Position numbers and translations under genes: made by a program. Positions 3,426-57,100 of a stretch of 64,000 bases of DNA are shown piece after piece. The number at the start of each line of letters is the position of its first letter. Within the stretch, counting starts at the first letter, position 1. Below the pieces are notes generated by a model, which saw only the letters and a list, made by a program, of their open reading frames with translations, was not told where the DNA came from and did no database searches. Source of the DNA: Anaeramoeba ignava BMAN (lineage: Eukaryota > Protista > Anaeramoebae). Where the stretch lies: positions 310,001 through 374,000 of the forward strand of contig JAPDFW010000076.1 of NCBI GenBank assembly GCA_028826165.1. Reading direction: 5' to 3'.

Positions 3426-5433
3426 TCAATTAATTGATTTCTTGATTTCTTGATTTGATTTGATTTCTTGATTTTTTGATTTGATTTGTTTTTTTTTTAT
3501 AAGAAATGTTATTTGAATTCTGTTAATTTTTTTGAAAAACAAAATAATAAGAATTGGATTATTGATAAAAATTCCCAAAAGATTAATCAAAAAAAAATTT
3601 CTTTACATTTTCATTTCGTTTCCCAAATCCTAAAAAATTTAAATAATTTTTCTTTTAAATTTAAGGAGAATTCTTACAAAAAGTTCAATTTCTTCCTATT
3701 ATTTTTTGTTAGAAAAAAAAGGAAAATTAAATTTTAAATTTTAAATAAAAAATTAAAAAGAAAAACAATTTTACATTTTTTTGATCTTCTTTTTTCTTTT
3801 CGAAATTAATCCAAATATTATTATCATAAGTTAAATTAGGATTTTTAAATATTCCAAGATTTGTTTTTGTTGAAATAGATTTTTTGAAAAGAAGTGGAAA
3901 TTTTTGAAAAATTTCAAACATTTCTAAAACAAGAGCAAAAGGTTTTTGAATAAATTGTTGGAATAATTGAGTTGTTTTAACTTGAAAAATAAATGATTCT
4001 TTTTCAAATTGATTTTGATTTTCATAAATTTGAGTGATTTGAGTTGGAAAATCAAAAAAATCTAAAGTAAAAAAAATTCCACTTTTTAAATTCTTATTGA
4101 ATTCTATATTTATGATCTTCATTTCAATTAATTCCACTCTTTCCAAAATAAAAGGAGAATTTAAAGGAATTGAAATTGATTCATTTTCTTGATCATTTTT
4201 TAAATCTGGATTAATTTTTTCTAAAAGATCTATTAATCTTTCATTAATATCCTTTGCTTCAAATAATTGAAATCTTTTTTCATTCATTTTCATTTCAAAT
4301 TCTTTTTGAGAAGATGAAATAAATTGATTGAGTTCAAGAATTTGTTCGTTTAATTGAAGAAAATTGTTTTCTTTGGTTTTTAATTTTGAGTTGATTTGTA
4401 AAAGTTCATTTTGAGATTGTTGTTTTAAAAGGAAAAAAGATTTTTGGAAATGTTCATTTTTTTGATTTAAATCTGAAATTTTGTTTTGTTTCTCATCATT
4501 TTCTTTTTCCAATTCAAGAATTTTCCTTTTTAATTCTTCTAATTGAGTTTGATTAGTAATTTTTAATTGATCCAAATTAGTTTTTGATTTTTTTTCTTTT
4601 TCTTTTTCTTGAATCTCTTTGGAAAGAATTTCATTCTGTTTTAATAAAATTTTGTTTTGATTTTTGGATTGATTAAAATTGGAATTAATTTGATCAAATT
4701 GAGAAATCCAAATTTTTTTTTCTTTTTCTAAATTGAGGATTTTTCTTTTTTGAGACACATTAATAAAGGAAATATTCTTGTTTTTTTCTTTTAATTCCAT
4801 CATTTCATTTTTCAATTCCTGATTTTTTTCTTGAAATTGATTGATAGAATTTTGTGTAATTTGATTTATTTTTTGTAATAAGATTTTTTTGGAAAGTTTT
4901 TCTTTTTGAAGATTTTGAACAAGTTTTTGATTTTTGATTTTGAGTTTTTGGTTAATTTTTTGAATTAAATCCATTTTTTGATTCAAAATTTCCATTTCTT
5001 GAAAATTTTGATTTAAATCATTTTCAAATTTAGGGAAATCAAAAGAAAAAGATAATTGAAGATTATTTTGATTTTTTTGATTTTGATTTTGATTTTGATT
5101 TTGATTTTGATTTTGATTTTGATTTTGATTTTGATTTTGATTTTGATTTTGATTTTGATTTTGATTTTTTTGATTTTGATTTTTTTGATTTTGATTTTTT
5201 TGATTTTGATTTTTTTGATTTTGATTTTTTTGATTTTGATTTTTTTGATTTTGATTTTGATTTTGATTTTTATTTTGATTTTGATTTTGATTTTGATTTT
5301 GATTTTGATTTTGATTTTTAGTTAGAAAATTAAGTTGATTTTCCATGTTTTTGAGTTGATTTTTTTGTTTTTGAATTTTTTTAGAAAGAATAAATTGTTC
5401 TTGTTTTTGAAATTGATCAAAAAAATTTTTCAT
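3426..5433 (-). CDS. Coiled-coil plus C2-domain protein, RPGRIP1L/RPGRIP1 (fantom/MKS5)-like
   Basis: Long coiled coil with an NQ tract, then IFFTLDFFDFPTQITQI...FQVKTTQLFQQFIQK...LVLEMF, resembling the first RPGRIP1L C2 domain. Proposed GT-AG exons 5433-3775, 3695-3678, 3629-3607, 3519-3426 stay in frame; the 3' micro-exons are tentative. Confidence 0.6.
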
Positions 5434-5618: not shown

Positions 5619-7965
5619 TTAATTAAGATAAATAGTGCGAAAAAATTCAGCATTTAATTTATCAACTTCTTTAGAAATATTAGAAATATTCAAGTTTTGA
5701 TTTTCAACAAGCATTAAAATCAATCTTGAACCAGCTCTTTTCATTACAATCCAAAGAGAATTATTGATATTTGTTGTAACTTCAATTAAATTTTGGTCCA
5801 AATTGACATATTTTTCGGTTTGAGTTTGTTTTTGAGAATCAAGATTGTTTTCGATTGGATCTTTGTTATTTTCTTGGTTTTGAGCCTTTGTTTGTTGTTC
5901 GATATTTTTCAGTTGAAAATAACGTTTTTCTTGATTAATAAATAAACGTTCTGAATTATAAAAGGAATCAACAATACTTGATAAATACATCAAGAACTGA
6001 TGGCGCAGTTCGAATTCCTTGCACATACTGAGGGTTTCTTTAAGAGCAAGGTTCATTTCGTTGAAATAAAGGAATTTATAAAGAAGTTCGTTTTGCGAAG
6101 AAATTTGCAGAATATGTTCTGATTTAAACAAGTTATTAACAATTGTTTCAATTTCCGTTTCAATTCTTTTCTTCATTTGATTGTAAAAAGACATTGTTTG
6201 TAGTTTTTCATCGGGCTCAACTAGCAAACAGAAAATGACTTTGTTTGCTTTATAAATAAGTAAAACATGTTGTTTTTTTTCTTCGTTTCCAACAAAAATT
6301 TTGGGAAGAAAAAAATTCTTTTTGGAATCCAATTTGGGACCTGTTATGAAGTCAGAGAAGTTACTTCTTGCTTTTGCGATTGTTTGTGTGATGTGGAACA
6401 CTAATTCTGGATAGTTAAAAAGATCTGGGTTTTGTGGCAATTTGGAAATGTCTTCTAAAGACCAATTAAAATAGTTTTTTGGTTGAGGCAATTGAGGTGA
6501 TGCTGTTTTGCCAATAAAAAATTCCTCAATCCCAACAAGATATTCATTTTCCACTGCTGGTTTTGGATTGATATATCCACACAAGAAATTGTATAGTGAA
6601 TTTGTATCTGATAAATTGAGTGAACTCCAAATTAAGTTGGATCCATATAAGAAAATTGAATGTTTGATTTTTGAAAATGAACTCTCAATCATATTGACAA
6701 AACAATAAACTTTTAAAAACATGTTTTTGTCTAAAGGATAATACCGAATCCCTAATTGTTTTATTTTGTCGTCCGTTATGTTGATTGAATATTAAGGAAA
6801 TTCTTGTTTGCGTTATTTTTGTTTTCGTTTTTTTACCCTGAAATAATGAAAGTAATCTTTTTTTCAATGATGTTTGAATAAAATCAACTGTTGGAATGAA
6901 AAAGCTGAAGAATTGATTCACTTTATTTCTTAATTCTTCGAGTGAATAGTTTGTTATTAAGTGGTTGAATGAGTGATAAAATAATGAAAACATATAATAT
7001 CCTTTTCTCAATGCTTGAAACAAGCAATTATCGTTAGTGAATTCATATTTAAATTTCTCGTTTTTTTTTGATTCTTTAGCCTGTGTGTTTGATGCGTTTT
7101 TAATCAACTAAAATTTTAATTTTAATTTTAATTTTATAAATGAATTTTATAAATTGGTTTTTAATTTTAATTTTAATTTTAATTTTAATTTTAATTTTAT
7201 AAATGAATTTTATAAATTGATTTTAATTTTAATTTTAATTTTAATTTTAATTTTAAATTTTAATTTTAATTTTAATTTTATAAATGAATTTTATAAATTG
7301 ATTTTGATTTTAATTTTAATTTGAATTTGAATTTTATAAATTGATTTTTAATTTTATAAATTGATTTTAATTTTATAAATTGATTTTGATTTTGAATTTT
7401 AATTTTAATTTGAATTTGAAATTGAATTTTGATTTTAATTTTAATTTTAATTTTAATTTGAATTTGAATTTTAATTGATTTTGAAATTGCTTTAAATTCG
7501 AATTAATTGAAGACTTCAGTTTTTTAAAAGTAAAATTATAAAAGTAATAAATACAAAAACCATCCAATAATTAGGTTCAGGTTCAAAAAAAACCCATCTA
7601 TATTTCTCAGTATGTAAAGAAGCTTGAGGAAATGAAGAAGAAAATGTTCTAAATTATGAAATAAAAATAAATGAAATGAAATTAAATTAAATTAAATTAA
7701 ATAAAATTAAATTAAATTAAAATAAAATAAAAATAAATTAAATTAAATTAAAATAAATTAAATTAAATGAAATTAAATTAAATTAAATTAAATTAAACCT
7801 TGAAAAAGCAATTGTTGCTTGTGCAAATCCTATATTTAAAAGTTGTTTATCAATAGGTATTTTATTTGGAAGATAAAGTATAATTTTATCTGCTTCATTT
7901 TTTAAATTGATTACTCTCCTAAAAATAAAAAAAGAATCAAATCTTGGAATTTGGAAAATATTCAT
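5619..7965 (-). CDS. CCZ1: Vacuolar fusion protein CCZ1 (Mon1-Ccz1 Rab7 GEF subunit)
   Basis: Exons 7965-7799, 7648-7555, 7107-6837, 6751-5619, all GT-AG and in frame. Motifs: KIILYLP..QLLNIGFAQA..FSR, FFEPEPNYWMV, GIRYYPLDKNMFLKV, YKFLYFNEMNLA. Confidence 0.9.
7110..7500 (-). repeat. (AAAATT)n microsatellite in CCZ1 intron 2
   Basis: TTTTAA/TTTGAA hexamers on +, with interspersed TTTTATAAATGAA units. Confidence 0.9.
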
Positions 7966-10969: not shown

Positions 10970-13900
10970 TTAAAAATTATTTACAGATTCAACAATATCA
11001 AAAACAATATCACTGAAAGGAATCTTCATTTCATTAATATTTTTATGTAAACTTGGGATTAAGCTGTCATTATCACCATCATCGTCATCATCATCATCAT
11101 CGCTATCATCAAAATCACTATCATTATCATTATCATTATCATTATCATTATCATTATCATTATCATTATCATTATCATTATCATCAAAATCACTATCAAA
11201 ATCTGATTGGGAATTTTGATCATTTTCAATAAGTAAATTTTCATTTTGATTTTCTTTTTGATTTTGATTTTCTTTTTGATTTTGATTTTGATTTTGATTT
11301 TCTTTTTCTTTTTTATTTTCTTTTTGATTTTCTTTTTGATTTTCTTTTTGATTTTGATTTAATTTTGAGTTTGAATTTTGATTTTGATTTAATTTTGAAT
11401 TTTCATTTTCATTATTTAATTTCTTCATTTCTGAAATATATATAGAATTTGTAGCAGGATCATAACCCCTAATATTAATATCATTGAAAGAATTGGTTAA
11501 TTTCAAATTTTGGAACAATTGCAAAACAGGAATATTTTGATTTGGAAACCAAAGAGGATGATTAGTTTTAAAATTGACAATTGCTTTTTCAATTTTTCCA
11601 TCAGAAGGAATATTATTAGTATCTTTTCCAGAACAAGGAGAACCATATTTTGGGTTTCCATGAAGAGTTAAATCAAACAAACCCCAAGAACAAAGATCAC
11701 CAAGAATATTATCAGTTACTGTTAGTTCTTTAAATTTCTTTTGGAATAAAAGTGAACGTTGAGGAAAATGAAAAATAAAGAAGAATGGAGCATAAAAAGC
11801 AGATGAAATTTCAAGAAATAATGAATAAAGTTTGAGTTGAAATAGATTGACTAATTCTTTTCTTGTTTGGGGCATATGCTCCTTATTTCTCCAGTTGTCT
11901 GGTCTGTAATGTGTATGTTTTGATAAAATTCGCATGGCTTTTACTGGTTCATATACTGCTATTTTTTCTGACATGCTTATATGTGTTGATGTGTAAATTA
12001 TTGTTAATATTCCAATAAACCATGCTAAACTTCTATCCCCAAATATTTCCATTTGAAGTAAAAATTCTATGTCAAATATAACACTCATTATTCCAAAAAC
12101 TACCAAGAATGATCCAGATACAAATGAAACAAAGCTTTTGCCAAAATATAATTTTAATTTTAATTTTATAAATTTAATTTTAATTTTATAAATGAATTTT
12201 ATAAATGAATTTTAATTTACTTTAATAAAGGAACAACTTCACCTGGTGGAAATTGTTTTAAATAATCATTTGAAGGTTGATTAGATAATTTTATTCTTTT
12301 ATCAAATATATGAGGAAGTTCATTTGGTTCTCTAAATAACCATTTAGCTTTATAAGACCATTCTCGAGATGAAGCAACAGAAAAATCTGAATGAATCTGT
12401 TTTTATTTTTTTAAATTTAAATTTTTAATTTTTTTCCGATTTTTATTTTTTTGAATTTTTTTACTTCTTCTCCATATTTGAAAAACCAATAAATAACCAT
12501 AAAAAATGCAACAAAAGGTGAAATAACTAAGAACAAAATTCCAATCCAAAAAGATCTTTTTTTCATTCTAAATAATTTTTTTTCAGAAAAATTTCAAAAT
12601 AAATAATTTAATTTTTTAAATTTGATATTAATAAATACTCTTCAATTTTCCAAGTTCCAATAAGATATGTTTTGTTCACATGATTATGTTTATCAAAAAA
12701 AGGACGAAAAACAATTCTTTCTAATAGAAAATCAAATAATTTTGTTTTTGGAAATTTAAAACCGAAAATTTTTTCTTCGTTTATCATTGCCATTTTGTAA
12801 TTATCTCTTCTCATAATTTGAGAAACTATATAGAATTCATCAATAGATTTAGATTTAAAAAAACTTAAATTAGAAAGTTTATGAACAACTTCTGACCAAT
12901 AAATTGTTGATAATTGATCCTTTTTATAAAAAAAAAATGGAATAAGTTAATTGAAATGAATAACAATTCTTTTTTTCATTCTGAATTTAACAAACTTCAG
13001 TAATTTTAAGTGTTTTGTTATAAAATCTTTTCATTTCTTTAAGATGTGGATAAATTTTAAAAATTTCGTAAATTTGAAATATTAAATATATAATTAATCC
13101 AAGAAGAAATATAGCCAAGAACCAAGATAAGCTTTAAATGTTTAAATTAATTTTTAATTATTAATTTTTTTCCGATTTTAATTATAAATTATTTTTAATT
13201 TTTAATTTTAAATTATTTACTGTGCTATTCCTTGCCAAAAAGTTCGAAGTGATGTATGAAATCTTTGATTTTTAAAACGTTCCCAATCAACCATTCCACC
13301 AAGAAAGAAAATTATACAAATCATAAAGAAAAACGTTCTTTTTTTTTTTAAAATGTAAAAAAAAATTATTTTCAATTATTTTTTAAAAAGAAATAATAAA
13401 AACTATACAAGCAATCAATTATTTTTGCTGTTAAAATTCTAAGAAAACCTGTTCCATAAAAATAATTATAAATGTAAAGTGAAGTCAAAGGAAAACAAAT
13501 TTTACATTTTACATTTTATAAATGAATTTTAATTTATATTTTAATTTTAATTTTAATTTGAATTTGAATTTGAATTTTATAAATGAATTTAAATTTTAAT
13601 TTTATAAATGAATTTGAATTTAATTTTAATTTTAATTTTATAAATGAATTTAAATTTTAATTTTATAAATGAATTTTAATTTTAATTTTAATTTTAATTT
13701 TATTTTTAATTTTAATTTTAATTTTATTTTGATTTGAATTTTACATTTTATAAATGAATTTTAATTTATATTTTAATTTTAATTTTAATTTGAATTTTAT
13801 AAATGAATTTTAATTTTAATTTTATAAATGAATTTTTAAAGGATATTCTTTGATAAACATTTGCTTCTTGAAAATGTGAATTTATTTCATGATTCAAATT

Positions 13901-13996
13901 TAAAATTGGCATCAGATAAAGTGTTTCACTTTCATCTTCTGAAGATTCTTCATGATTTAAATTAGGTTCAAATTCAAGTTCAATTTCTTGTGACAT
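10970..13996 (-). CDS. ATG9: Autophagy protein ATG9 (about 730 aa, 8 exons; intron 1 is U12-type AT-AC)
   Basis: Exons 13996-13847, 13473-13409, 13337-13221, 13131-12996, 12919-12639, 12567-12465, 12396-12221, 12134-10970 splice in frame. ATG9 motifs: RIYNYFYGTGF, QIMRRDNYKMAMIN, SREWSYKAKWLFREPNELPHIF, HTHYRPDNW, LGDLCSWGLFD..HGNPKY, DGKIEKAIVNF. Confidence 0.93.
13474..13846 (-). other. U12-type (minor spliceosome) AT-AC intron, 373 nt
   Basis: 5' end AGA|ATATCCTTTAAA; branch sequence TTTTCCTTTGAC with the A at 13485; 3' end TTTAC|ATT. Splicing joins VYQR to IYNYFYGTGF in phase 0. Confidence 0.92.
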
Positions 13997-14203: not shown

Positions 14204-14611
14204 ATGGATGATTTTGAAAATTTACAACAAGAAAATCATTTAGAAAATGAAACAGGAAAAATTCAACAAATGGAACAAGAACTTGATAAAATACTTTCCA
14301 AATTTGAAAATGGAGAATTAAATTGTTTTGGGAAAGAACAATCAAAAATATTTTCAGAAATGGATAAATTTCAACAAGAACACATTCAATTTGCAACAGA
14401 TCATTTAACACTAATTAAAAAAATTGAGTTCGATGAAGATTTTGAACCAGAAAAAGAAGATTTAAAATCAACAACTTTTCAATTTGAAAAAATTTCAAAA
14501 TCTTTTACACAAAAAGAAAAAGTTATTGATAAATTTACAATTAGAATGGAAAAGTTATTTAGAGATTTTGAAAGAATTCATCATATGATTGAATCATCTA
14601 AAAAAGATTAA
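14204..14611 (+). CDS. CCDC28 (DUF4061)-like coiled-coil protein
   Basis: Intronless 135-aa ORF. MEQELDKILSKFENGELNCFGKE...MDKFQQEHIQFATDH resembles the CCDC28 core (LL..F.SG.L.AFG.E...M......L...H). Confidence 0.6.
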   Translation: MDDFENLQQENHLENETGKIQQMEQELDKILSKFENGELNCFGKEQSKIFSEMDKFQQEHIQFATDHLTLIKKIEFDEDFEPEKEDLKSTTFQFEKISKSFTQKEKVIDKFTIRMEKLFRDFERIHHMIESSKKD

Positions 14612-14789
14612 ATTTAATTTAAATTAAAATTAAAATAAAAATTGTTTTTAAATTCAAATTGATTAAAGTTTTTTATTTGAAAAAAAAGAGTCACAAAATT
14701 TTTCAGTTAAAAAAAAAAAACAAGAATAAACAAAATTTAGAAAGAAAAAAAAAACTGAAATAGATAATAATAGTGATTGAAAATGTAAT

Positions 14790-15925
14790 TTTTTTGATAA
14801 AGAATTTGATAAATATTTTAATAAAGAATTTAATAAAGAATTTGATAAAGAATTTAATAAATAATTTTATAAAGAATTTAATAAAGAATTTAATAAAGAA
14901 TTTAATAAAGAATTTGATAAAGAATTTAATAAAGAATTTAATAAAGAATTTAATAAAGAATTTGATAAAGAATTTAATAAAGAATTTGATATATAATTTG
15001 ATAAATAATTTAATAAAGAATTTAATAAATATTTTAATAAAGAATTTAATAAATATTTTAATAAATAATTTTATAAAAGAATTTGATAAAGAATTTGATA
15101 AAGAATTTGATAAAGAATTTGATAAAAGAAATTAATAAAGAATTTAATAAAGAATTTAATAAAGAATTTAATAAAAAGAATTTAATAAAGAATTTAATAA
15201 AGAATTTAATAAAGAATTTAATAAAGAATTTAATAAAGAATTTAATAAAGAATTTAATAAAGAATTTAATAAAGAATTTAATAAAAGAATTTAATAAAGA
15301 ATTTAATAAAGAATTTGATAAAGAATTTAATAAAGAATTTAATAAAGAATTTAATAAAGAATTTGATATATAATTTAATAAAGAATTTAATAAAGAATTT
15401 AATAAATATTTTAATAAAAGAATTTAATAAATATTTTAATAAAGAATTTAATAAATATTTTTAATAAAGAATTTAATAAATATTTTAATAAAGAATTTAA
15501 TAAAGAATTTAATAAAGAATTTGATAAAGAATTTGATAAATAATTTGATAAAGAATTTAATAAAGAATTTAATAAAGAATTTAATAAAGAATTTAATAAA
15601 GAATTTAATAAAGAATTTGATAAAGAATTTAATAAAGAATTTAATAAAGAATTTAATAAAGAATTTGATAAAGAATTTAATAAAGAATTTGATAAAGAAT
15701 TTAATAAAGAATTTAATAAAGAATTTGATAAAGAATTTAATAAAGAATTTAATAAAGAATTTAATAAAGAATTTGATAAATATTTTAATAAAGAATTTAA
15801 TAAAGAATTTGATAAATATTTTAATAAAGAATTTAATAAAGAATTTGATAAAGAATTTGATAAATAATTTGATAAATAATTTGATAAATATTTTAATAAA
15901 TATTTTAATAAAGAATTTGATAAAG
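14790..15925. repeat. 12-bp intergenic satellite (ATAAAGAATTTA / ATAAAGAATTTG)
   Basis: Tandem 12-mers between convergent genes; source of the spurious IKNL/KEFN ORFs. Confidence 0.95.
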
Positions 15926-27427: not shown

Positions 27428-30278
27428 ATGAGTTTAAACAACGCAATGGAAGATGAAAAAATGATAAAAGATGAAAAAGAAATTGATAAAATAATAATAA
27501 AAAAACAAAAACCAAAAATTCAAGTTGAAAATTTAAATGAATCAAATAAAAATCAGAAAAATCGAATTTTTCTAAATGAATCACAAATGAATCAAATTTT
27601 AATGGATCCAAAACCAAATCAAAATCAAAATCAAAATCAAAATGAAAATCAAAATCAAAATCAAAATCAAAATCAAATTCAAAATCAAAATGAAAATGAA
27701 AATGAAAATCAAAATCAAAATCAAATTCAAAATCAAAATCAAAATGAAAATCAAAATCAAATTCAAAATCAAATTCAAAATCAAAATCAAAATCAAAATC
27801 AAAATCAAATTCAAAATCAAAACCAAAATCAAAACCAAAATCAAAATCAAATTCAATATCAAAATCAAAATCAATATCAAAATCAAAATCAATATCAAAA
27901 TCAAAATCAAATTCAATATCAAAATCAAAATCAATATCAAAATCAAAATCAAAATCAATATCAAAATCAAAACCAATATCATCATCCAAATGCAATCAAA
28001 ATTCAAGATCAAAATCAAAAAGGGATTTTTTTTCAACATAAAGAAACTGATGATTCAAGAGCACAAATGCAAAATTTAAGCTTTTTCGATAACATTTCAT
28101 CCAGATTAGCGAAATCACTAAGTCCAAACAGCATGTATTCACAATTTAAATTATCACAATCACTTGAAGACAAACTCAAATTATACACATCAAGAAATAT
28201 TGAAATGAAAACACCACAAAATACACAAAGTTTCCCACGTTCAGGAAGTTTAGGAAGTTTTGGGACAATTCAAAATCATTTGAGGACACAAGAACCACAA
28301 TATTTCCAAACAACACTTAAAAACGAACCAAGATCAGTTCCCAATTTGAATATGTTATGGACAGAACAAAAAATGATGAATCGAAAAGAAAATGAAAATT
28401 TAAAAATGAATATGAATGTAAATATGAATCCGAATATGAATCCAAATATGAATCCAAATATTAATCCAAATATGAATCCAAATATTAATCCAAATATTAA
28501 TCCAAATATGAATCCAAATATGAATCCAAATATGAATCAAAATATGAATCAAAATATGAATCAAAATATGAATCAAAATATTAATCAAAATATGAATCCA
28601 AATATGAATCCAAATATTAATCCAAATATGAATCCAAATATGAACCCAAATATGAACCCAAATATTAATCCAAATATTAATCAAAGACAAGCTTTTATGT
28701 CTTATGAATTCCCCCAAAATCGTCATCAACCAATCACATCTTCTTCACTTCCCTATTTCTCAAATCTTCGGAATGAAAAATTTTCACATTTATCAGAATC
28801 ACTTCCAAAAGAAACATTCATGACATCACCAAACCAACAATCATATTTTCGGACATTTTCACCAATAACAAACGGACAAAAAACATATCCAAACTTGAGC
28901 AACATGAACATAGGGGTGAATATACAAGCACCACAAGCAATGAAACCATTCAAAACAAGGAATTCACAACAAAAATTTTCATATTCAACAGAAGATGATT
29001 TGAATCTTGAAGAAATTCAAGAGAAAAACGAGCCGAATATTGAGTACAATTTCCAGAACTCTGATTGGTATCAAGTTGAGTTTAAATCTGGACGGCGTGA
29101 TTTATATTATTGTCACCGTTCAATGAAGATGGTAAATAATGATTTTGTGATTGTCGAAGCAGATCGCGGTCACGATTTGGGAAGAGTCGCTTCCTTTGTC
29201 TCTTTCGAAGAACTTGAGGCTGGTTTGGATTCTGATGTTGATGATTCTTTGTTTGATGATAAGATGAGAATCATTAGAAAGGCCACTGATGCTGAAATTA
29301 ATCAATTGAAATCAAAAATGGAGGATGAAAAAAATGCTTTGATTGTTTGTCGAAATAAAGTTACTCAACGTAATTTACCAATGAAGGTAATTTTGATATT
29401 TGAGTTGAAATTTAAAATAATTCAAATCAAATCAAAATAATTCAAATCAAAATAATTTAAATTAAATAATTTCAAATTAAATTAAATAATTCAAAATAAT
29501 TCAAATAAAATCCAAAAATAATTTCAAATCAAAATAATCCAAATTAAATAATTCAAAATAATTTAAATTAAATTAAATAATTCAATCCAATTCAAAATAA
29601 TTTAAATTAAATAATTTAAATTAAATAATTCAATCCAATTCAAAATAATTTAAATTAAATAATTCAAATAAAATCCAAAAATAATTCAATCCAAATCAAA
29701 ATAATTCAAATTAAATAATTCAAAATAATTTAAATTAAATTAAATAATTCAATCCAATTCAATCCAATTCAATCCAATTCAAAATAAATTAAATTAAATA
29801 ATTCAAATAAAATAATTCAATCCAAATCAAAATAATCCAAATTAAATAATTCAATCCAATTCAATCCAATTCAAATTAAATAATTCAAATAAAATAATTC
29901 AATCCAAATCAAAATAATTTAAATAAAATAATTCAATCCAAATCAAAATAATTCAAATTAAATAATTCAAAATAATTCAAATAAAATAATCCAAAAATAA
30001 ATTAAATAATTCAAATAATTAAATTGAAAAAAATCCAAAAAAAAACTCAATAATTCAAATTAAATTGAAAAAAATTCAATCCAATCCAAATTAATTAATA
30101 CTTCAAAATATTTTGATTTGTTTAGGTTTTTGATGCAGAATTTCAATTTGATCGAAAGAAATTAACCTTTTATTTCTCTGCAAACTCAAGAATTGACTTT
30201 AGAGAGCTTGTTAGAGATTTGTTTAAAATTCATAAAACAAGAATATGGATGAAACAAATAGAAACAAAAGATAATTAA
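27428..30278 (+). CDS. PSP1 C-terminal domain protein with NQ and NPNM low-complexity tracts
   Basis: Exons 27428-29386 and 30126-30278. Motifs: [70 protein letters not shown]. Confidence 0.93.
29410..30090. repeat. AAATAATTC / AATCC composite satellite in the PSP1 intron
   Basis: Directly visible. Confidence 0.85.
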
Positions 30279-46591: not shown

Positions 46592-49339
46592 TTAAATATC
46601 TAAATCATCTTGAAGTTCTTTTTCTTCTTGTTTTTTTTCTTGTTTTCTTCTTTGTTTTTTTGTTCTTGTTTTTTTCTTATATAAAAGAATTGCAATAATA
46701 ACTATTAAAATAATAAGAATTGGAATAAATATTCCAATAGTTATTGCTGTTGTGTTGGAATTGTTTGAATCAGTTGATTGAGTTGGTTCATAAGGAGATA
46801 ATATTGTAATTGATGTTGTTGAATTAATTCCTGAATATTCATTATTTGAACAATTTAAATCAGATGATGAATAAACTGAAATTTCATAATATTCTCCTCC
46901 TTGTAATCCTGAAGTAATTGAATAATAAGCTGCTAGTAAATTTGTTAAACAAATTGATGTTGAGTTATAAGTAAATGAATATGCTTTTAATCCACTTGAT
47001 AAAATTAATGAATTCCAAGTACAAATAAATCCATTAATTAATGAATAACAATTTAATGAAGTAATATCTCCTAATTTAGCTCTTGTTGAAATAATTGAAC
47101 TAGGTAATCCTAAATATGGTGTTTCACAATTTAAATCAATACATCCTCGAATTGAAATATTATATTCAATATTTCCTGATATTTCACTTATTATTCCAAT
47201 AACTTCATTTCCACTTAAATTAAGAGATGTGAATTTTTGCCAATTTGTTCCATTATCAAGTGAAATTGAATAATTATTTGCATTTGTTAATTTTGTAAAA
47301 TTAAATTCAATTTCTTCAATTTTGGAAATTGTTTCATAAATTGTTGGAGATGTTAAATTATCAGTTGTAATTGAAATTGATGAAATATATCCACATTTTC
47401 CATTTGAATTACATGCTGATATATTGATTTGATATTCTTGATTTGGGAATTGAGCTGTAAATTGTTGATTTGTTGAAATTGGTTGATAATTTCCTGAATA
47501 ATTTTGAGAAATTGATTGATAAGTAAAATTATAATAAAATGGAATTGAACAATTAATTGGTTGATTCCAATTACAATTAATATCGATTAAATTTGAAATT
47601 GAACATGTTAAATTTGTAATTTCACCAAAAATTAATGAAATTGATGATTCAACAATTTCTCCTTTATCATCTCCTTCACATTCTTGTGTTCTACATCCAC
47701 AAATTGAAATATTATAATCATTTTCACATTCTAAATTATTCCAAAAATAATCAAGTGAAGAATTATCAACTGAAATGAAAGATATTAAATCAGGTTGAGA
47801 TTGATTGAAATAAGAAAGATTATAATGATCAATATGAGCAATTCCTTCATTGATTTGAACATTTGGATAATTCCAAGTAACATTAATTGAATTATTTGAA
47901 GGATTTGATAATTGGAAATCTTTTACAGAATCAATTTTTGTTGTTAAATTAATGAAAGAAGAAGATTCACCACATATCATTGATACATGATTACAAGCTT
48001 GAATTTGAATTGAATAATATTCATTTCCAGTAATATTATCATAAATTGAAGAATTAAATAATTGATAATAAACATTCTCATCTTCAAGAATTGGAGAATC
48101 AATATCAATCCAATCATATCCATAATTAATTTGATATTTCAAATTTGGAAATTCAATTTTATTCCAATAACAATCAAATGATGAAAACAAAGATGAACAA
48201 TTAACAATATTAACTTGAGGTAATTTAGCTTCATAAACAAATGCTTTATTTGCATCAGGAGCACCAACAACAATAAAATTCTCATAAATTGAAACAGAAC
48301 TTCCAAAATTTGAAGCTGAAGGTCCATTCAAAATTTGTTCTTCATTCCAAATTGATTCATTATATCTATAAATAAATGCTTGATTTGCACCAGGAGCATC
48401 AACAACAATAACATCTTCATAAATTGAAACAGAAAATCCAAAATTTGAAGCTGATTCATTCAAAGTTTGTTCAAGTTCAAAATTTGATTCATTATATCTG
48501 TAAATAAATGCTTGATTTGCATAAGTCCCAATAACAATAACATCTTTATAAATTGAAACACTTCCTCCAAAAGCTGAAGGTCCATTCAAAGTTTGTTCTT
48601 GATTCCAAAATGTTCCATTATATCTGTAAACAAATGCTTTGTTTGCCATATCAGTTCCAATAACAGTAACATTTTCATAAATTGAAAGAGAAATTCCAAA
48701 ATATAAAACTGATGATTCATACAACATTTGTTCTTGATTCCAAATTGATCCATTATATCTGTAAATAAATACTTGATTTGCATCATAATCAGTTCCAATA
48801 ACAGTAACATTCTCATAAATTGAAACAGAATATCCAAAATCTGTAACTGAAGATTGATATAAAATTTGTTCTTGATTCCAAATTGATCCATTATATCTGT
48901 AAATAAATGCTTTATTTGGAACAGGAGCACCAACAACAATAACATCTTCATAAATTGAAACAGAAAATCCAAAATTTGAAACAGAAGATTCATTCAAAGT
49001 TTGTTCAAGTTCAAAATTTGTTCCATTATATCTGTAAATAAATACTTGTTTTGCCATATAAGCCCCAATAACAAGAACATCTTTATAAACTGAAACAGAA
49101 CGTCCAAAATATCCTGAACCTGAAAATTGATCTAATAAATTCCAAATCCAAGCTTCATTGAAAGAAGAATAATATCTTGTTGTTTCTGTTAATGTTTCTA
49201 TTTCTGTTAATATTGGTGATATTAATGATGATGAAATTGATTTTTGATTTTGATTTTGATTTTGATTTTGATTTGATTGAATTAAGAAAATATTGATAAT
49301 TAAGAAAAAGAAAAAGGAAAAGAAAAGATTTAATTTCAT
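46592..49339 (-). CDS. Type I surface glycoprotein: signal peptide, FG-GAP beta-propeller, FN3 repeats, TM helix, short tail (integrin-alpha-like architecture)
   Basis: Hydrophobic N-terminus; about 7 repeats FGxSVSIYxxxxVxGA..AFIYRYN; FN3-like W..P/Y..SI.AC units; TM ITIGIFIPILIILIVIIAILLY; many NxS/T sites. Confidence 0.88.
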   Translation of the reverse strand: MKLNLFFSFFFFLIINIFLIQSNQNQNQNQNQKSISSSLISPILTEIETLTETTRYYSSFNEAWIWNLLDQFSGSGYFGRSVSVYKDVLVIGAYMAKQVFIYRYNGTNFELEQTLNESSVSNFGFSVSIYEDVIVVGAPVPNKAFIYRYNGSIWNQEQILYQSSVTDFGYSVSIYENVTVIGTDYDANQVFIYRYNGSIWNQEQMLYESSVLYFGISLSIYENVTVIGTDMANKAFVYRYNGTFWNQEQTLNGPSAFGGSVSIYKDVIVIGTYANQAFIYRYNESNFELEQTLNESASNFGFSVSIYEDVIVVDAPGANQAFIYRYNESIWNEEQILNGPSASNFGSSVSIYENFIVVGAPDANKAFVYEAKLPQVNIVNCSSLFSSFDCYWNKIEFPNLKYQINYGYDWIDIDSPILEDENVYYQLFNSSIYDNITGNEYYSIQIQACNHVSMICGESSSFINLTTKIDSVKDFQLSNPSNNSINVTWNYPNVQINEGIAHIDHYNLSYFNQSQPDLISFISVDNSSLDYFWNNLECENDYNISICGCRTQECEGDDKGEIVESSISLIFGEITNLTCSISNLIDINCNWNQPINCSIPFYYNFTYQSISQNYSGNYQPISTNQQFTAQFPNQEYQINISACNSNGKCGYISSISITTDNLTSPTIYETISKIEEIEFNFTKLTNANNYSISLDNGTNWQKFTSLNLSGNEVIGIISEISGNIEYNISIRGCIDLNCETPYLGLPSSIISTRAKLGDITSLNCYSLINGFICTWNSLILSSGLKAYSFTYNSTSICLTNLLAAYYSITSGLQGGEYYEISVYSSSDLNCSNNEYSGINSTTSITILSPYEPTQSTDSNNSNTTAITIGIFIPILIILIVIIAILLYKKKTRTKKQRRKQEKKQEEKELQDDLDI

Positions 49340-52199: not shown

Positions 52200-54097
52200 A
52201 TGTTACCAAATAATCTTCAAAGTAGAATTTGTCAAATTTGTTTTGAAAAATTTTCAACTGAAAGAAAACCAATGATAATATGTAGTTATGGACATAATGT
52301 TTGTTCTTATTGCGCAAGTTTTTTAGAAGAATGTCCCTTTTGTAGATCACCAAAAAGCAAAAAACCAACTATAAATTTGCTAGTTTTAGAAATGATTGAA
52401 GAAATTGAAAAACGGGAAAAAATCAAAATTCCCGAAATCAATTCAAAAGAGTTATTTATTGAAAATTCACCATTTAGTTTTGGAGCAGTTGCTGATTTAT
52501 ATAAAGCAAATTGGGGTAATCAATTTGTGGCTGTGAAAAAATTAAGAATGAACCCAAGCAAAACGGATAAAAAAATCCTCAAAAACGAAGTTGAAATTGC
52601 ATCCAATCTTCCTCATCCAAACATTATAAGGGTTTTTGGGATTACAAAGATTAATAAACAACTAGGAATTGTTATGGAATATCTTGAGCCAGGATCACTT
52701 GAAAAAATTATTCCAACTTTATCTTTTATTGAATGCGTGAATATTTGTCTTGGAATTATTGATGGATTGAAATATCTTCATTCCAAAAATGTTATTCATC
52801 GAGATTTAAAACCAGCAAATCTTCTTCTTGATGGGAAAGTCCCAAAAATTTCGGATTTTGGTCAATCAATTATTCATCAAAAAATTTTCCAAAATGCAAA
52901 TATTAAAGGTTCAATTGAATATACTGCTCCAGAAATTTTGAAAAATGAAACAGTGAGTGATCGAACTGTTGATATTTACAGTTTTTCAATGATAATTTTC
53001 CATTTATTTTCTAAAAAGAAGCCTTTTGATGATTTGAATTTGTTCCAGATTATCACTTATTTGCAGAAAGGAATTCGTCCAGAAATTTCTCAGAATTTGA
53101 TTCCAGAATCACTTTCGAGATTAATCATACGCGGATGGTCAGGAAATCCAACAGAAAGACCAAGTCTTGATGAATTTCGAAAAGTTTTTCAAGAATTAAA
53201 ATTGTTTTTTGAAAATGAAAATTCCAATTCCAATGAAAATTTAAATCAAAATGAAAATTTAAATCAAAATGAAAATTTAAATCAAAATGAAAAATTTGAT
53301 GAACTTTCAATACAACTTCAACAATTTCTCCAAATTTCTCCTTTAAAATCAAACCAAAACCAAAAGAATAAAAATCAAATTAATTTCTCAAAACTTGAAG
53401 TTGAACAATGTATTGAATTGTTAAGTAAATCTGAAAATGAACAAAAAATTCAAGAAAAAGGAATTGAACGTTTATCAAATTTATCAATAATAAGAGGTAA
53501 TCAATATTTTTTTTCCCTAAATTGATTTATTGGATTAACAAAAAATAAAATGAACCATTTTTTATTTTTAGAAAATCGAACAAAAATTTCAAATTTAAAT
53601 GGATTTCAAGTAACTTTTTCAATTATGAAAAAATTTCCTGATAATTTAAATATTCAATTAAATGGTTCAACAATTTTAGCAAATTTGATGACTAAAAACA
53701 AAGGTAAATTGAATTTTAAAAACAAAAAAAAAATTTGATTAATTTATTGATCTTCTTTTGATTTAAAAAGAAAATCAATCAATATTTGCAAATTTATCAG
53801 GAGTTCAAATAATAATTGGTTTAATGAATAAATATCCTGATAATGAATCAGTTCAACAAAAAGCCTGTTTAATATTGAAAAAAGCCGCAGAAAATGCAGG
53901 TAATTAAATTACAAAAATCAATTTAAATTTAATTAATTAATTAATTAATTGTTTTATTTTTTATTTTTTATTTAGAAAATCGTTTTGAAATGATAAATTG
54001 GGGATTTTCTTTTTTTATTGCAGAATTGATTCATAAATTCCCAAATAATAAAGAAATTAAAATGATTGGGCAATCTTTAATAAATCAATTAAAATAA
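52200..54097 (+). CDS. RING finger, TKL-type protein kinase, armadillo-repeat protein
   Basis: Exons 52200-53496, 53572-53703, 53771-53899, 53976-54097. CQIC..CSYGHNVCSYC..CPFCR; VAVK, HRDLKPAN, DFG, APE; ARM units (MKKFPDN..IQ, MNKYPDN..VQ). Confidence 0.9.
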
Positions 54098-54190: not shown

Positions 54191-57100
54191 CTATATTTTT
54201 ATTCCTTTTTTATTTTGATTAAATAGAACACTAAATTTTTTCCAATCAAAAAGAGAATTTCCTAAAGGAAAAAATTCTCTTTTAGCTTCAATATTAATCA
54301 TTAAAGCCAGTGAAGTATAAGAACTGAGAATTGAAGCCATTAAACAAGGAATTCCAACCAAAATGGAATTAAATTTATAAGCAAAATCAAGAATCAAAAA
54401 GAAAATTGCAATATCCATCCAAAATAAAAGCCAAAATTGAACTTTTGTGAGTTGTAAAGCAAATAAAGTGAAGAACATCATAAAAAAAAAGATTGCAAAC
54501 AGAAAAGATGCAAAAACTCTTTCTTCTGGTTCAATATTTTTTTTGGATGAATTCCATAATCCTTTTATCCAAGAAACAGCTAAAGAGAAAAAGAGTAAAG
54601 TAATTAACTAAAAATCAATTTTTTGAATATTTTTCTTTTCTGTTGTTTATTTTTTTTTAATTTTGATAAGAATAATTTTTTACAAAAAAAAAGCTTGCTC
54701 CGAAATTGTGTTTAACTCTAAAATCCAGAATAGCAGCAATCAAAGTTAATAAAGCAGGAAAGAATAAGAAAAAACTAAGTTTCGGAACTAATTCATTTAA
54801 GATTATTAAAATTATTTATAAAATCAAAATTAAAATCAAAATTAAAATCAAAATTAAAATCAAAATTAAAATTTATCTCGAGATTCAAAACAAAATGTTG
54901 ATGTTTTATTGAAATGGATTTATTTTGGAAAAGTTTTAATTTCAAATTTATCAATTTTTGAAGAATGGAAAAAAAAATTATCAAATATTTCAAAAGTTAA
55001 AATAAAAATAGGAATCAATCCACTTTTAGATGATTTGAAAAGATTAATGAATGAAGAAGAAACCAAAGATTTCCAAATAATTTCAAATAATCAAAAAATC
55101 AAAATTCATAAAATAATTTTGATTGCAAGAAGTGAGTTATTTAGAGGAATGTTTATAAGTGTAACTGAAGATAAATCAAATTCAGTTCATGAATACAGTA
55201 ACAAAAAAACAAAAACAATCCAAAATCTAGTTAATTTCTTTTATACAGATGAAATTCCAAAAATCAAAAACAAAACAATACTTAAAGAATTAAAAGAATG
55301 TGTTGATTATTTCCAATTAAATTCAAAAAGATTAAATCAACTAATTAAAAAAATTATTGGTGAAATTCCTCAACAACAACAACAACAACAACAAAATTCA
55401 AAAAAGAAATGTTTAATTTTTTGAATTTTTATTTTCTTGATCAAAGAATTTTCAAATTTTGATTTAATTTAATTCTTTTCAAAAAAATAATTATTTTTTT
55501 TTGAATTATTTTTTCCAAATTTCATTTTTCAATTTTCAATTTTCAATTTTCATTTTTCATTTTAAACGAAATCAATGAAACAACAAAACAAAAAAGATTA
55601 TGATTTACTTTTGAAAATTATTCTTGAAGGAGATTCTGGAACTCAAAAAAATAAGATTATACAAAAATTTATGCAGGAAATAGTTACACAATCAAATGAC
55701 AGATGGATTGATTTAGGTCCCTTATGCAAAGTGATTGAAATTCAAGGAAAAACAGTTTTACTTCAAATAAACAACATTAATAAATATGGTTTGTCTTGGA
55801 AAATTAAAAGAAAAACCAAAATATTTTTTGGAGAATTAATCGGAAAAAAAAATTTTAATTTAATTTTAATTGGTTTTTTTATGATAATGATTTATGAGGA
55901 GGGTATAAGTCAGCATATAAAAGTATTTCTTTTTGTTATTAAAAAAAATTCAAAAATCAAATTCTAATTATATTTTTATTTTTATTTAGGTTTTTATAGC
56001 AAAGCTTATGGAGCAATGATAGTTTATGATATTACTAATAAAAAATCATTCGAAAATGTTGAAAAAATTTGGAAGTACCGAATCAGAATGCATGCAAAGG
56101 AAAATATTCAAATGATGTTAATTGGAAGTAAATGTGATTTGGAAAATGAAAGAAAAATATCAAAAAAAAGTGGAAAAAAACTTGCTGATAAATTGGGAAT
56201 TCCTTTTTATGAAGTTTCAGTCAAAGAAAATATCAATATTGAGGATGCTTTCACAGAATTAACAATGAATATTTTGGATAATCTTGATGAAAATAATCAA
56301 CTTAAACCAAAACCAAAATCAAAACCAATAATTTATTCAATTCAAGAAGATATGAAGCAATTATTTGAAAGAAAAGAATTATGTGATTTTGAAATTGAAT
56401 GTAAAGATGATCAAAATCCACTTTCAAAATTCAAAATTCCAGTTCATAAATTAATTATTCAAAATCGATTAAGGATTGATGAAAATCAACTTGAAAACCA
56501 ATTCTATTCAATTTTATCTCGAGATTCAAAACAAAATGTTGATGTTTTATTGAAATGGATTTATTTTGGGAAAGTTTTACTTTCAAATTTATCAATTTTT
56601 GAAGAATGGAAAAAAAAATTATCAAATATTTCAAAAGTTAAAATAAAAATAGGAATCAATCCACTTTTAGATGATTTGAAAAGATTAATGAATGAAGAAG
56701 AAACCAAAGATTTCCAAATAATTTCAAATAATCAAAAAATCAAAATTCATAAAATAATTTTGATTGCAAGAAGTGAGTTATTTAGAGGAATGTTTATAAG
56801 TGTAACTGAAGATAAATCAAATTCAGTTCATGAATACAGTAACAAAAAAACAAAAACAATCCAAAATCTAATTAATTTCTTTTATACAGATGAAATTCCA
56901 AAAATCAAAAACAAAACAATACTTAAAGAATTAAAAGAATGTGTTGATTATTTCCAATTAAATTCAAAAAGATTAAATCAACTAATTAAAAAAATTATTG
57001 GTGAAATTCCTCAACAACAACAACAACAACAAAATTCAAAAAAGAAATGTTTAATTTTTTGAATTTTTATTTTCTTGATCAAAGAATTTTCAAATTTTGA

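Follow-up and report, generated by a model that had tools for sequence, protein, structure and literature searches.

A spliced U12-type AT-AC intron in ATG9 of Anaeramoeba ignava and candidate components of a minor spliceosome

The first intron of an ATG9 gene in Anaeramoeba ignava BMAN starts with AT and ends in AC, which raises the question of whether a U12-type intron is spliced at this locus, and by which machinery. The gene lies on the minus strand of the 64,000-nt stretch of DNA that was analysed as a whole (hereafter the window; Table 1). A first-pass annotation, made from the letters of the window, had proposed a U12-type intron in an Anaeramoeba-like metamonad, and the source is indeed A. 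ignava BMAN. Homology searches were run exon by exon; the last exon matched the ATG9 domain (PF04109, E 5e-29), and a word-index homologue search with the same exon returned no match, probably because of a length limit and the low-complexity tail. A second ATG9 gene, with a 629-aa open frame and fewer introns in its 3′ part, was located at C110:155373-156704 (-), and A. flamelloides carries two ATG9 copies per strain. On the opposite strand, the neighbouring gene at 14204-15135 (+) begins some 210 nt away from the start of ATG9, with a TTTTAA repeat between the two, and is covered by a contig of run X1 (see below). Elsewhere, the window encodes an Inturned/CCZ1-like longin-domain protein (5619-6722, -), longin domains being also present in MON1-CCZ1, and a protein with an RPGRIP1-type C2 domain (3727-5433, -), both of cilium-associated families and here in an amoeba, as well as an FG-GAP/fn3 membrane protein (46592-49339, -), a RING-finger protein kinase (52200-53525, +), a Ras-BTB fusion (56016-57062, +) and a PSP1-domain protein (27428-29440, +).

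Table 1. Features of the ATG9 locus and candidate minor-splicing loci of A. ignava BMAN. Locations without a prefix are window positions; a slash marks the intron position in a protein motif.
Feature	Location	Strand	Details
ATG9 gene	10970..13996	-	8 exons, ~730 codons
ATG9 exon 1	13847..13996	-	150 nt, 50 codons, ends ...ANVYQR; under X1 record 3
ATG9 intron 1, U12-type AT-AC	13474..13846	-	373 nt, phase 0 (R/I); sequence and spliced contig
U12-type 5′ splice site	13838..13846	-	ATATCCTTT; exact fit to [GA]TATCCTT
Low-complexity interior of intron 1	13498..13836		AATTTT x53, higher-order periods 25 and 61, 5.4% GC
Candidate branch-point motif	13484..13495	-	TTTTCCTTTGAC; predicted branch A = 13485, position -12, 11 nt after
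3′ splice site TAC	13474..13476	-	ends CTTTAC; no polypyrimidine tract or AG
ATG9 exon 2	13409..13473	-	starts IYNYFYGTGF; under X1 record 3
ATG9 GT-AG introns, six	13408-13338, 13220-13132, 12995-12920, 12638-12568, 12464-12397, 12220-12135	-
Further U12-like intron	C64:391784-391863		80 nt, seen end to end; branch TTTTCCTTGAC, A at -13
U12-like intron	C1:503403 (L025:4904-5163)	+	260 nt; donor GTATCCTTT, branch TTTTTCCTTGAC, A at -12
U6atac candidate	C71:58882-58994		intergenic; 29.9 bits (Rfam cut-off 33), E 2.7e-4
U11 candidate	C1:50977-51083		26 bits, E 0.2, z -1.6; below Rfam cut-off
Major U6 gene	C70:323272-323305	-	exact 34-nt match; separate from the U6atac candidate
Major U4 gene	C95:129935-130074 (L009:1509-1648)		39.7 bits, below cut-off
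SNRNP25 domain (PF18036)	C116:13470-13739		E 6e-14; 166-aa open frame without stops
CENATAC domain (PF14968; N-terminal region, positions 1-71)	C64:1364446-1364661		E 4e-8; open frame without stops

Read along the minus strand from 13846 to 13474, the intron starts with ATATCCTTTAAA and ends with TTTTCCTTTGACTTCACTTTAC, and the sequence together with a spliced contig confirmed the coordinates that the first-pass annotation had given it. Translation continued into the intron ran into stop codons, and its removal, as had been claimed, restores the R-I-Y motif in frame: the joined QR/IYNYFYGTGF matches RVYSYY and RIYKYYY in the homologues, which read ERVYSYYTGKG, ERVYNYYCEKG and PRIYKYYYSKG at this site. 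The GT-AG type claimed for the other introns applies, within ATG9, to all six.

Splicing was assessed with contigs of X1, a run that bears no RNA label on its record and may stem from the genome's own study. X1 behaves as spliced RNA, since one of its contigs (record 2) skips ATG9 introns 5-7, all three of which are GT-AG. Another contig (record 3; 205 nt at a depth of 17.1, with 63 nt on its shorter side) joined 13471 to 13845 and skipped exactly 373 nt, at the 13847-13473 junction that had been proposed for checking. The junction has a 2-nt ambiguity, with the registers AT..AT, TA..CA and AT..AC on the gene strand and GT-AG in none of them, and the only canonical register of the skip is AT-AC, at 13846..13474. 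This support comes from one contig of one run, and contigs are silent on the level of retention. ATG9 intron 1 of A. ignava is a genuine, spliced minor-class (U12-type) intron, ordinary for its class. The culture is a consortium and the junction was seen in a single contig, as would also fit contamination by another eukaryote or a misread GT-AG intron. However, the composition of the window and the style of its introns are those of BMAN, the 373-nt skip fits no GT-AG register, the best protein matches of ATG9 are just 33-36% identical, and seven of seven intron phases agree with those of an orthologous gene. Such an artefact is already largely refuted and was given next to no credence.

The three-part U12 signature described by the first-pass annotation held for the donor, for the AC terminus and for the position of the branch A (A13485, at -12), but the branch motif carries one U beyond the consensus TTCCTTRAC. 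The donor fits the U12 consensus as stated in an earlier report (10.1101/2020.10.12.336362), and its complementarity extends over 8 nt with UUAAAGGA, the 5′ terminus of the U11 candidate, and over 6 bp with the AAAGGA box of the U6atac candidate. The distance of the branch motif from the 3′ end falls within the ~10-20 nt window, and A13485 would, judged from the motif, be the branch nucleotide. The extra-U form TCCTTTGAC followed by YAC was found twice genome-wide, the second copy being exonic; with n=2, a Physarum-like TTTGA branch consensus for BMAN was rejected.

Between these signals, the repeat-filled interior is real, as had been described. BMAN introns average 8.1% GC, a 14-mer of the interior recurs in ATG9 intron 7 and at two further places in the window, and an interior of AAAATT repeats is nothing unusual in this genome. 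Since AT-rich low-complexity interiors are usual here, the repeats add nothing on selection, and the argument that intact signals around a supposedly replaced interior reveal selection on them does not stand.

The age of the intron position was assessed by mapping the proteins of nine ATG9 genes exactly onto the genomes. A phase-0 intron was found at the site of ATG9 intron 1 in two fungi, Basidiobolus (FFER/VYSYY) and Gaertneriomyces (FLQK/MYQFF), and is GT-AG and U2-type in both, so that the comparison with orthologues proposed by the first-pass annotation did find the same site occupied. Further, the phases of the A. ignava ATG9 introns (0,2,2,0,2,0,2) equal those of the first seven introns of the Basidiobolus gene, with codon spacings of 21, 39, 46, 93, 35 and 58 in A. 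ignava and 21, 38, 46, 111, 34 and 59 in Basidiobolus. As the position is common to a metamonad and fungi, it is old, and by this sequence comparison it predates the split from fungi. In the same mapping, no intron occupied the site in either A. flamelloides copy or in Aristolochia, Bifiguratus, Neoconidiobolus or Planoprotostelium, and no second species with a U12-type intron at this site was found among the mapped genes; the Tritrichomonas ATG9 is intronless. On the mapped sequences, A. flamelloides lost the intron. Conversion of introns from U12 to U2 is one-way. From this direction of change, intron 1 would be ancestrally U12-type, and the fungal U2-type intron at the site is most likely a converted one. 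In Gaertneriomyces, the orthologous GT-AG intron (L035:1948-2007) opens with GTACTT and carries GCCTTAC close to its end, which might be left over from U12 signals. ATG9 has another U12 site, absent in A. ignava, which holds an AT-AC phase-1 intron in Basidiobolus (L039:2459-2530) and a GT-AG intron in Planoprotostelium (L038:2051-2101).

Other minor introns were then considered genome-wide. RTATCCTTT occurred 1550 times vs. 259 for its reversed control, and sampled sites were nearly all exonic; a count of 31 vs. 6 likewise amounts to no enrichment, since the reversed control word is simply rarer. A massive U12 expansion was therefore rejected, also in view of the published count of 32. The combination of ATATCCTTT, TTCCTTRAY and YAC within 6-13 nt was found at five further loci vs. 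0 in the control, with a rough chance estimate of ~2, and on inspection all five had AT-rich, intron-like interiors, as compared with 4 of 28 sampled donor motifs. One of the five could be seen end to end on C64 (Table 1), and about eight additional candidate introns combine an exact branch motif with an AT-rich interior. The intron at C1:503403 interrupts the potassium-channel pore motif YFIVI/SISTVGYGD, and the sole end that keeps the frame is AT, so that it reads, from its sequence alone, as a GT-AT intron, a type with no entry in the published Table S3B (PMC11550330). Similar U12-like introns occur in pairs at C93:515892 and 518731 (-), C105:68332 (+) and 188531 (-), and C79:162235 and 166609 (+), and probably sit in duplicated genes. 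The presence of TTCCTTRAY branch points in BMAN contradicts the remark in the published supplement that no branch point resembling a known motif was seen.

In the search for minor snRNAs, which the first-pass annotation had suggested, candidates were obtained for U6atac and U11, both scoring below the Rfam cut-offs, and no convincing gene was found for U12 or U4atac. The U6atac candidate begins with GUGU, contains the AAAGGAGAGA box and GGUUAGCA, and can fold into an internal stem-loop with a bulge (z -2.1). Downstream on its 3′ side (L003:1589-1657) lies a 12-bp stem around a 10-bp hairpin (z -2.8) without the usual 65K-binding loop. The candidate gene has internal T runs, and such runs stop Pol III in most eukaryotes. 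Four matches to U6atac relatives in metagenomes were judged to be due to chance. The U11 candidate folds freely into a four-way junction, with GGUUAUCAAUAC in the SLIII loop followed by an Sm-like site; on these features it is likely a U11 gene.

The Rfam search of the genome, in which scoring covered the best ~42-50 out of thousands of candidates, gave no match for U12, and its best match for U4atac was the major U4. The gene on C95 was rejected as a U4atac and taken as the major U4, given 39.7 bits as U4 vs. 35.2 as U4atac and its complementarity to major U6; stem II of major U6 is complementary to it, and stem I appears imperfect (UGCUUUUU vs. AUUAGCA). Three sequence patterns for U12 gave matches at control level only (for both U6 and U12, the patterns followed the consensus), and complement searches for U4atac gave stem II-like matches without stem I, pattern matches being again at control level. 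One U12 candidate (C58:345203-345228) keeps the branch-binding 14-mer ATGAGTAAGGAAAA and an AACCA complementary to UGGUU of U6atac, but the control also gave one match, two follow-up tests were negative, and the stretch is readable as possible coding sequence. Missed snRNAs are to be expected, since the search scores the top few dozen candidates, the genome is 81% AT and U11 itself barely registered.

The search for minor-specific proteins, likewise suggested earlier, detected an SNRNP25 domain and did not find the SNRNP48 zinc finger. The SNRNP25 domain and a CENATAC domain were identified as domain matches without a reciprocal test, and these two loci, like those of U12, U4atac, U6 and the second ATG9, are known from family or pattern searches. 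CENATAC serves AT-AN minor introns (PMC8280824). Six-frame searches gave no match for zf-U11-48K (PF05253) or zf-SCNM1 (PF15803), a weak test as the domains are short (25-27 positions), and a genome family search found one DIM1-family gene only, with no TXNL4B seen. The first-pass claim that U12 splicing is retained is supported by the AT-AC excision together with the U6atac and U11 candidates and the SNRNP25 and CENATAC domains; the genome was found to hold minor snRNA candidates, minor-specific protein domains and other introns of this kind.

If intron 1 were instead a relic AT-AC intron now spliced by the major spliceosome, the apparent minor machinery would consist of pseudogenes or chance matches. 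U2-type AT-AC introns do exist (PMC8280824), the ATG9 branch site is off consensus, and the snRNA candidates lie below their cut-offs. However, a perfect U12 donor is present in 27 of 33 BMAN AT-AC introns (PMC11550330), neither a polypyrimidine tract nor an AG is found at ATG9 intron 1, the frames of the SNRNP25 and CENATAC domains are open, and the U6atac candidate keeps the catalytic motifs and the stem-loop. A relic was accordingly rated very improbable.

A reduced or hybrid minor spliceosome, in which U11 and U6atac were kept and the role of U4atac (perhaps also of U12 and TXNL4B) passed to the major counterpart, on the way towards the hybrids of Giardia, was rated unlikely. It would account for U4atac and U12 not being found, for the single DIM1 gene and for a sole U4 that scores under both the U4 and the U4atac models; the 5′ end of this U4 forms a duplex of -14.4 kcal/mol with the U6atac candidate, and hybrid snRNAs have a precedent in Giardia (PMC6679479). 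However, snRNA misses are expected under the search conditions above, the U4 5′ end is much better matched to major U6 (13 bp), and the U4-U6atac duplex is not clearly above background, with 6.5% of random 32-mers binding the U6atac stem-loop alone equally well. By extension, a hybrid A. ignava machine specialised on AT-AC introns could be an intermediate to the loss in parabasalids and fornicates, A. flamelloides having kept only GT-type minor introns, a scenario that we hold to be just as doubtful.

ATG9 intron 1 is thus very probably an ancient U12-type AT-AC intron that is removed by a working, vertically inherited minor spliceosome. From the known mechanism, its removal would depend on minor snRNAs as follows. 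U11 would pair through its 5′ end with donor positions +4 to +11, and concurrently U12 would pair with the pyrimidine-rich branch site, leaving A13485 bulged; the extra U could be tolerated as a bulge or in a wobble-shifted register. U6atac would then displace U11 by means of the AAAGGAGAGA box, and both branching and the ligation at the AC, 12 nt further downstream, would be catalysed by the AGC triad and the internal stem-loop of U6atac. CENATAC may assist this AT-AC subtype (PMC8280824).

The inference of a minor spliceosome in A. ignava is already known, having been published in 2024 in Supplementary Note 1 of Jerlstrom-Hultqvist et al. (PMC11550330). That study counted 33 AT-AC introns in BMAN and 32 introns starting with (G/A)TATCCTTT (27 with A and 5 with G) among 32,108 (Supplementary Note 1, Table S3B); of the 32 RTATCCTTT introns, 27 are AT-AC, and the two A. 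flamelloides strains have 8 and 10 such introns, of GT type (PMC11550330). The Note reports no branch point resembling a known motif, describes no snRNA or protein search and leaves the host genes unnamed, and U12 is absent from the main text (PMC11550330). In the literature searched, no main text pairing Anaeramoeba with U12 or the minor spliceosome was found. The present analysis adds component candidates, a correction on branch points and the age of an intron position, which is useful but incremental.

Anaeramoebae are the sister group of Parabasalia (10.64898/2026.04.11.717937), surveys report no minor introns in Discoba (PMC10639083), and minor introns were not found in the diplomonads studied. 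A. ignava shows that metamonads possessed the minor system, with several losses. Further, the 27 AT-AC donors of A. ignava vs. 0 in A. flamelloides offer a testable case for the subtype role of CENATAC.

Compared with known U12 AT-AC introns, ATG9 intron 1 is alike in its RTATCCTTT donor, a TCCTT-rich putative branch site (A at -12), a YAC terminus and the lack of a polypyrimidine tract, and, as in known cases, it is a single minor intron among major ones at an old, conserved position; in contrast to known branch sites, its own has an extra U. It shares genome, intron class and inference with the published BMAN introns (PMC11550330). The low share of minor introns in BMAN (32/32,108, 0.1%) resembles that of known U12 systems, whereas 27 of its 32 minor-type donors are AT-AC vs. 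~24% in general (PMC8280824). As in Physarum polycephalum, the ATG9 branch site contains TTTGA, and its A at -12 is within the Physarum window of 9-12 nt; however, Physarum uses TTTGA as a rule, its U12 has co-evolved and its minor introns number ~20,000 (10.1101/2020.10.12.336362), while in BMAN TCCTTTGAC is rare, TTCCTTRAY is present and minor introns number ~30. Giardia is likewise a metamonad with minor-like splicing features, but its snRNAs form a single set and its introns are U2-like (PMC6679479), whereas in A. ignava the U6 and U6atac-like genes are separate and the introns fall into two classes.
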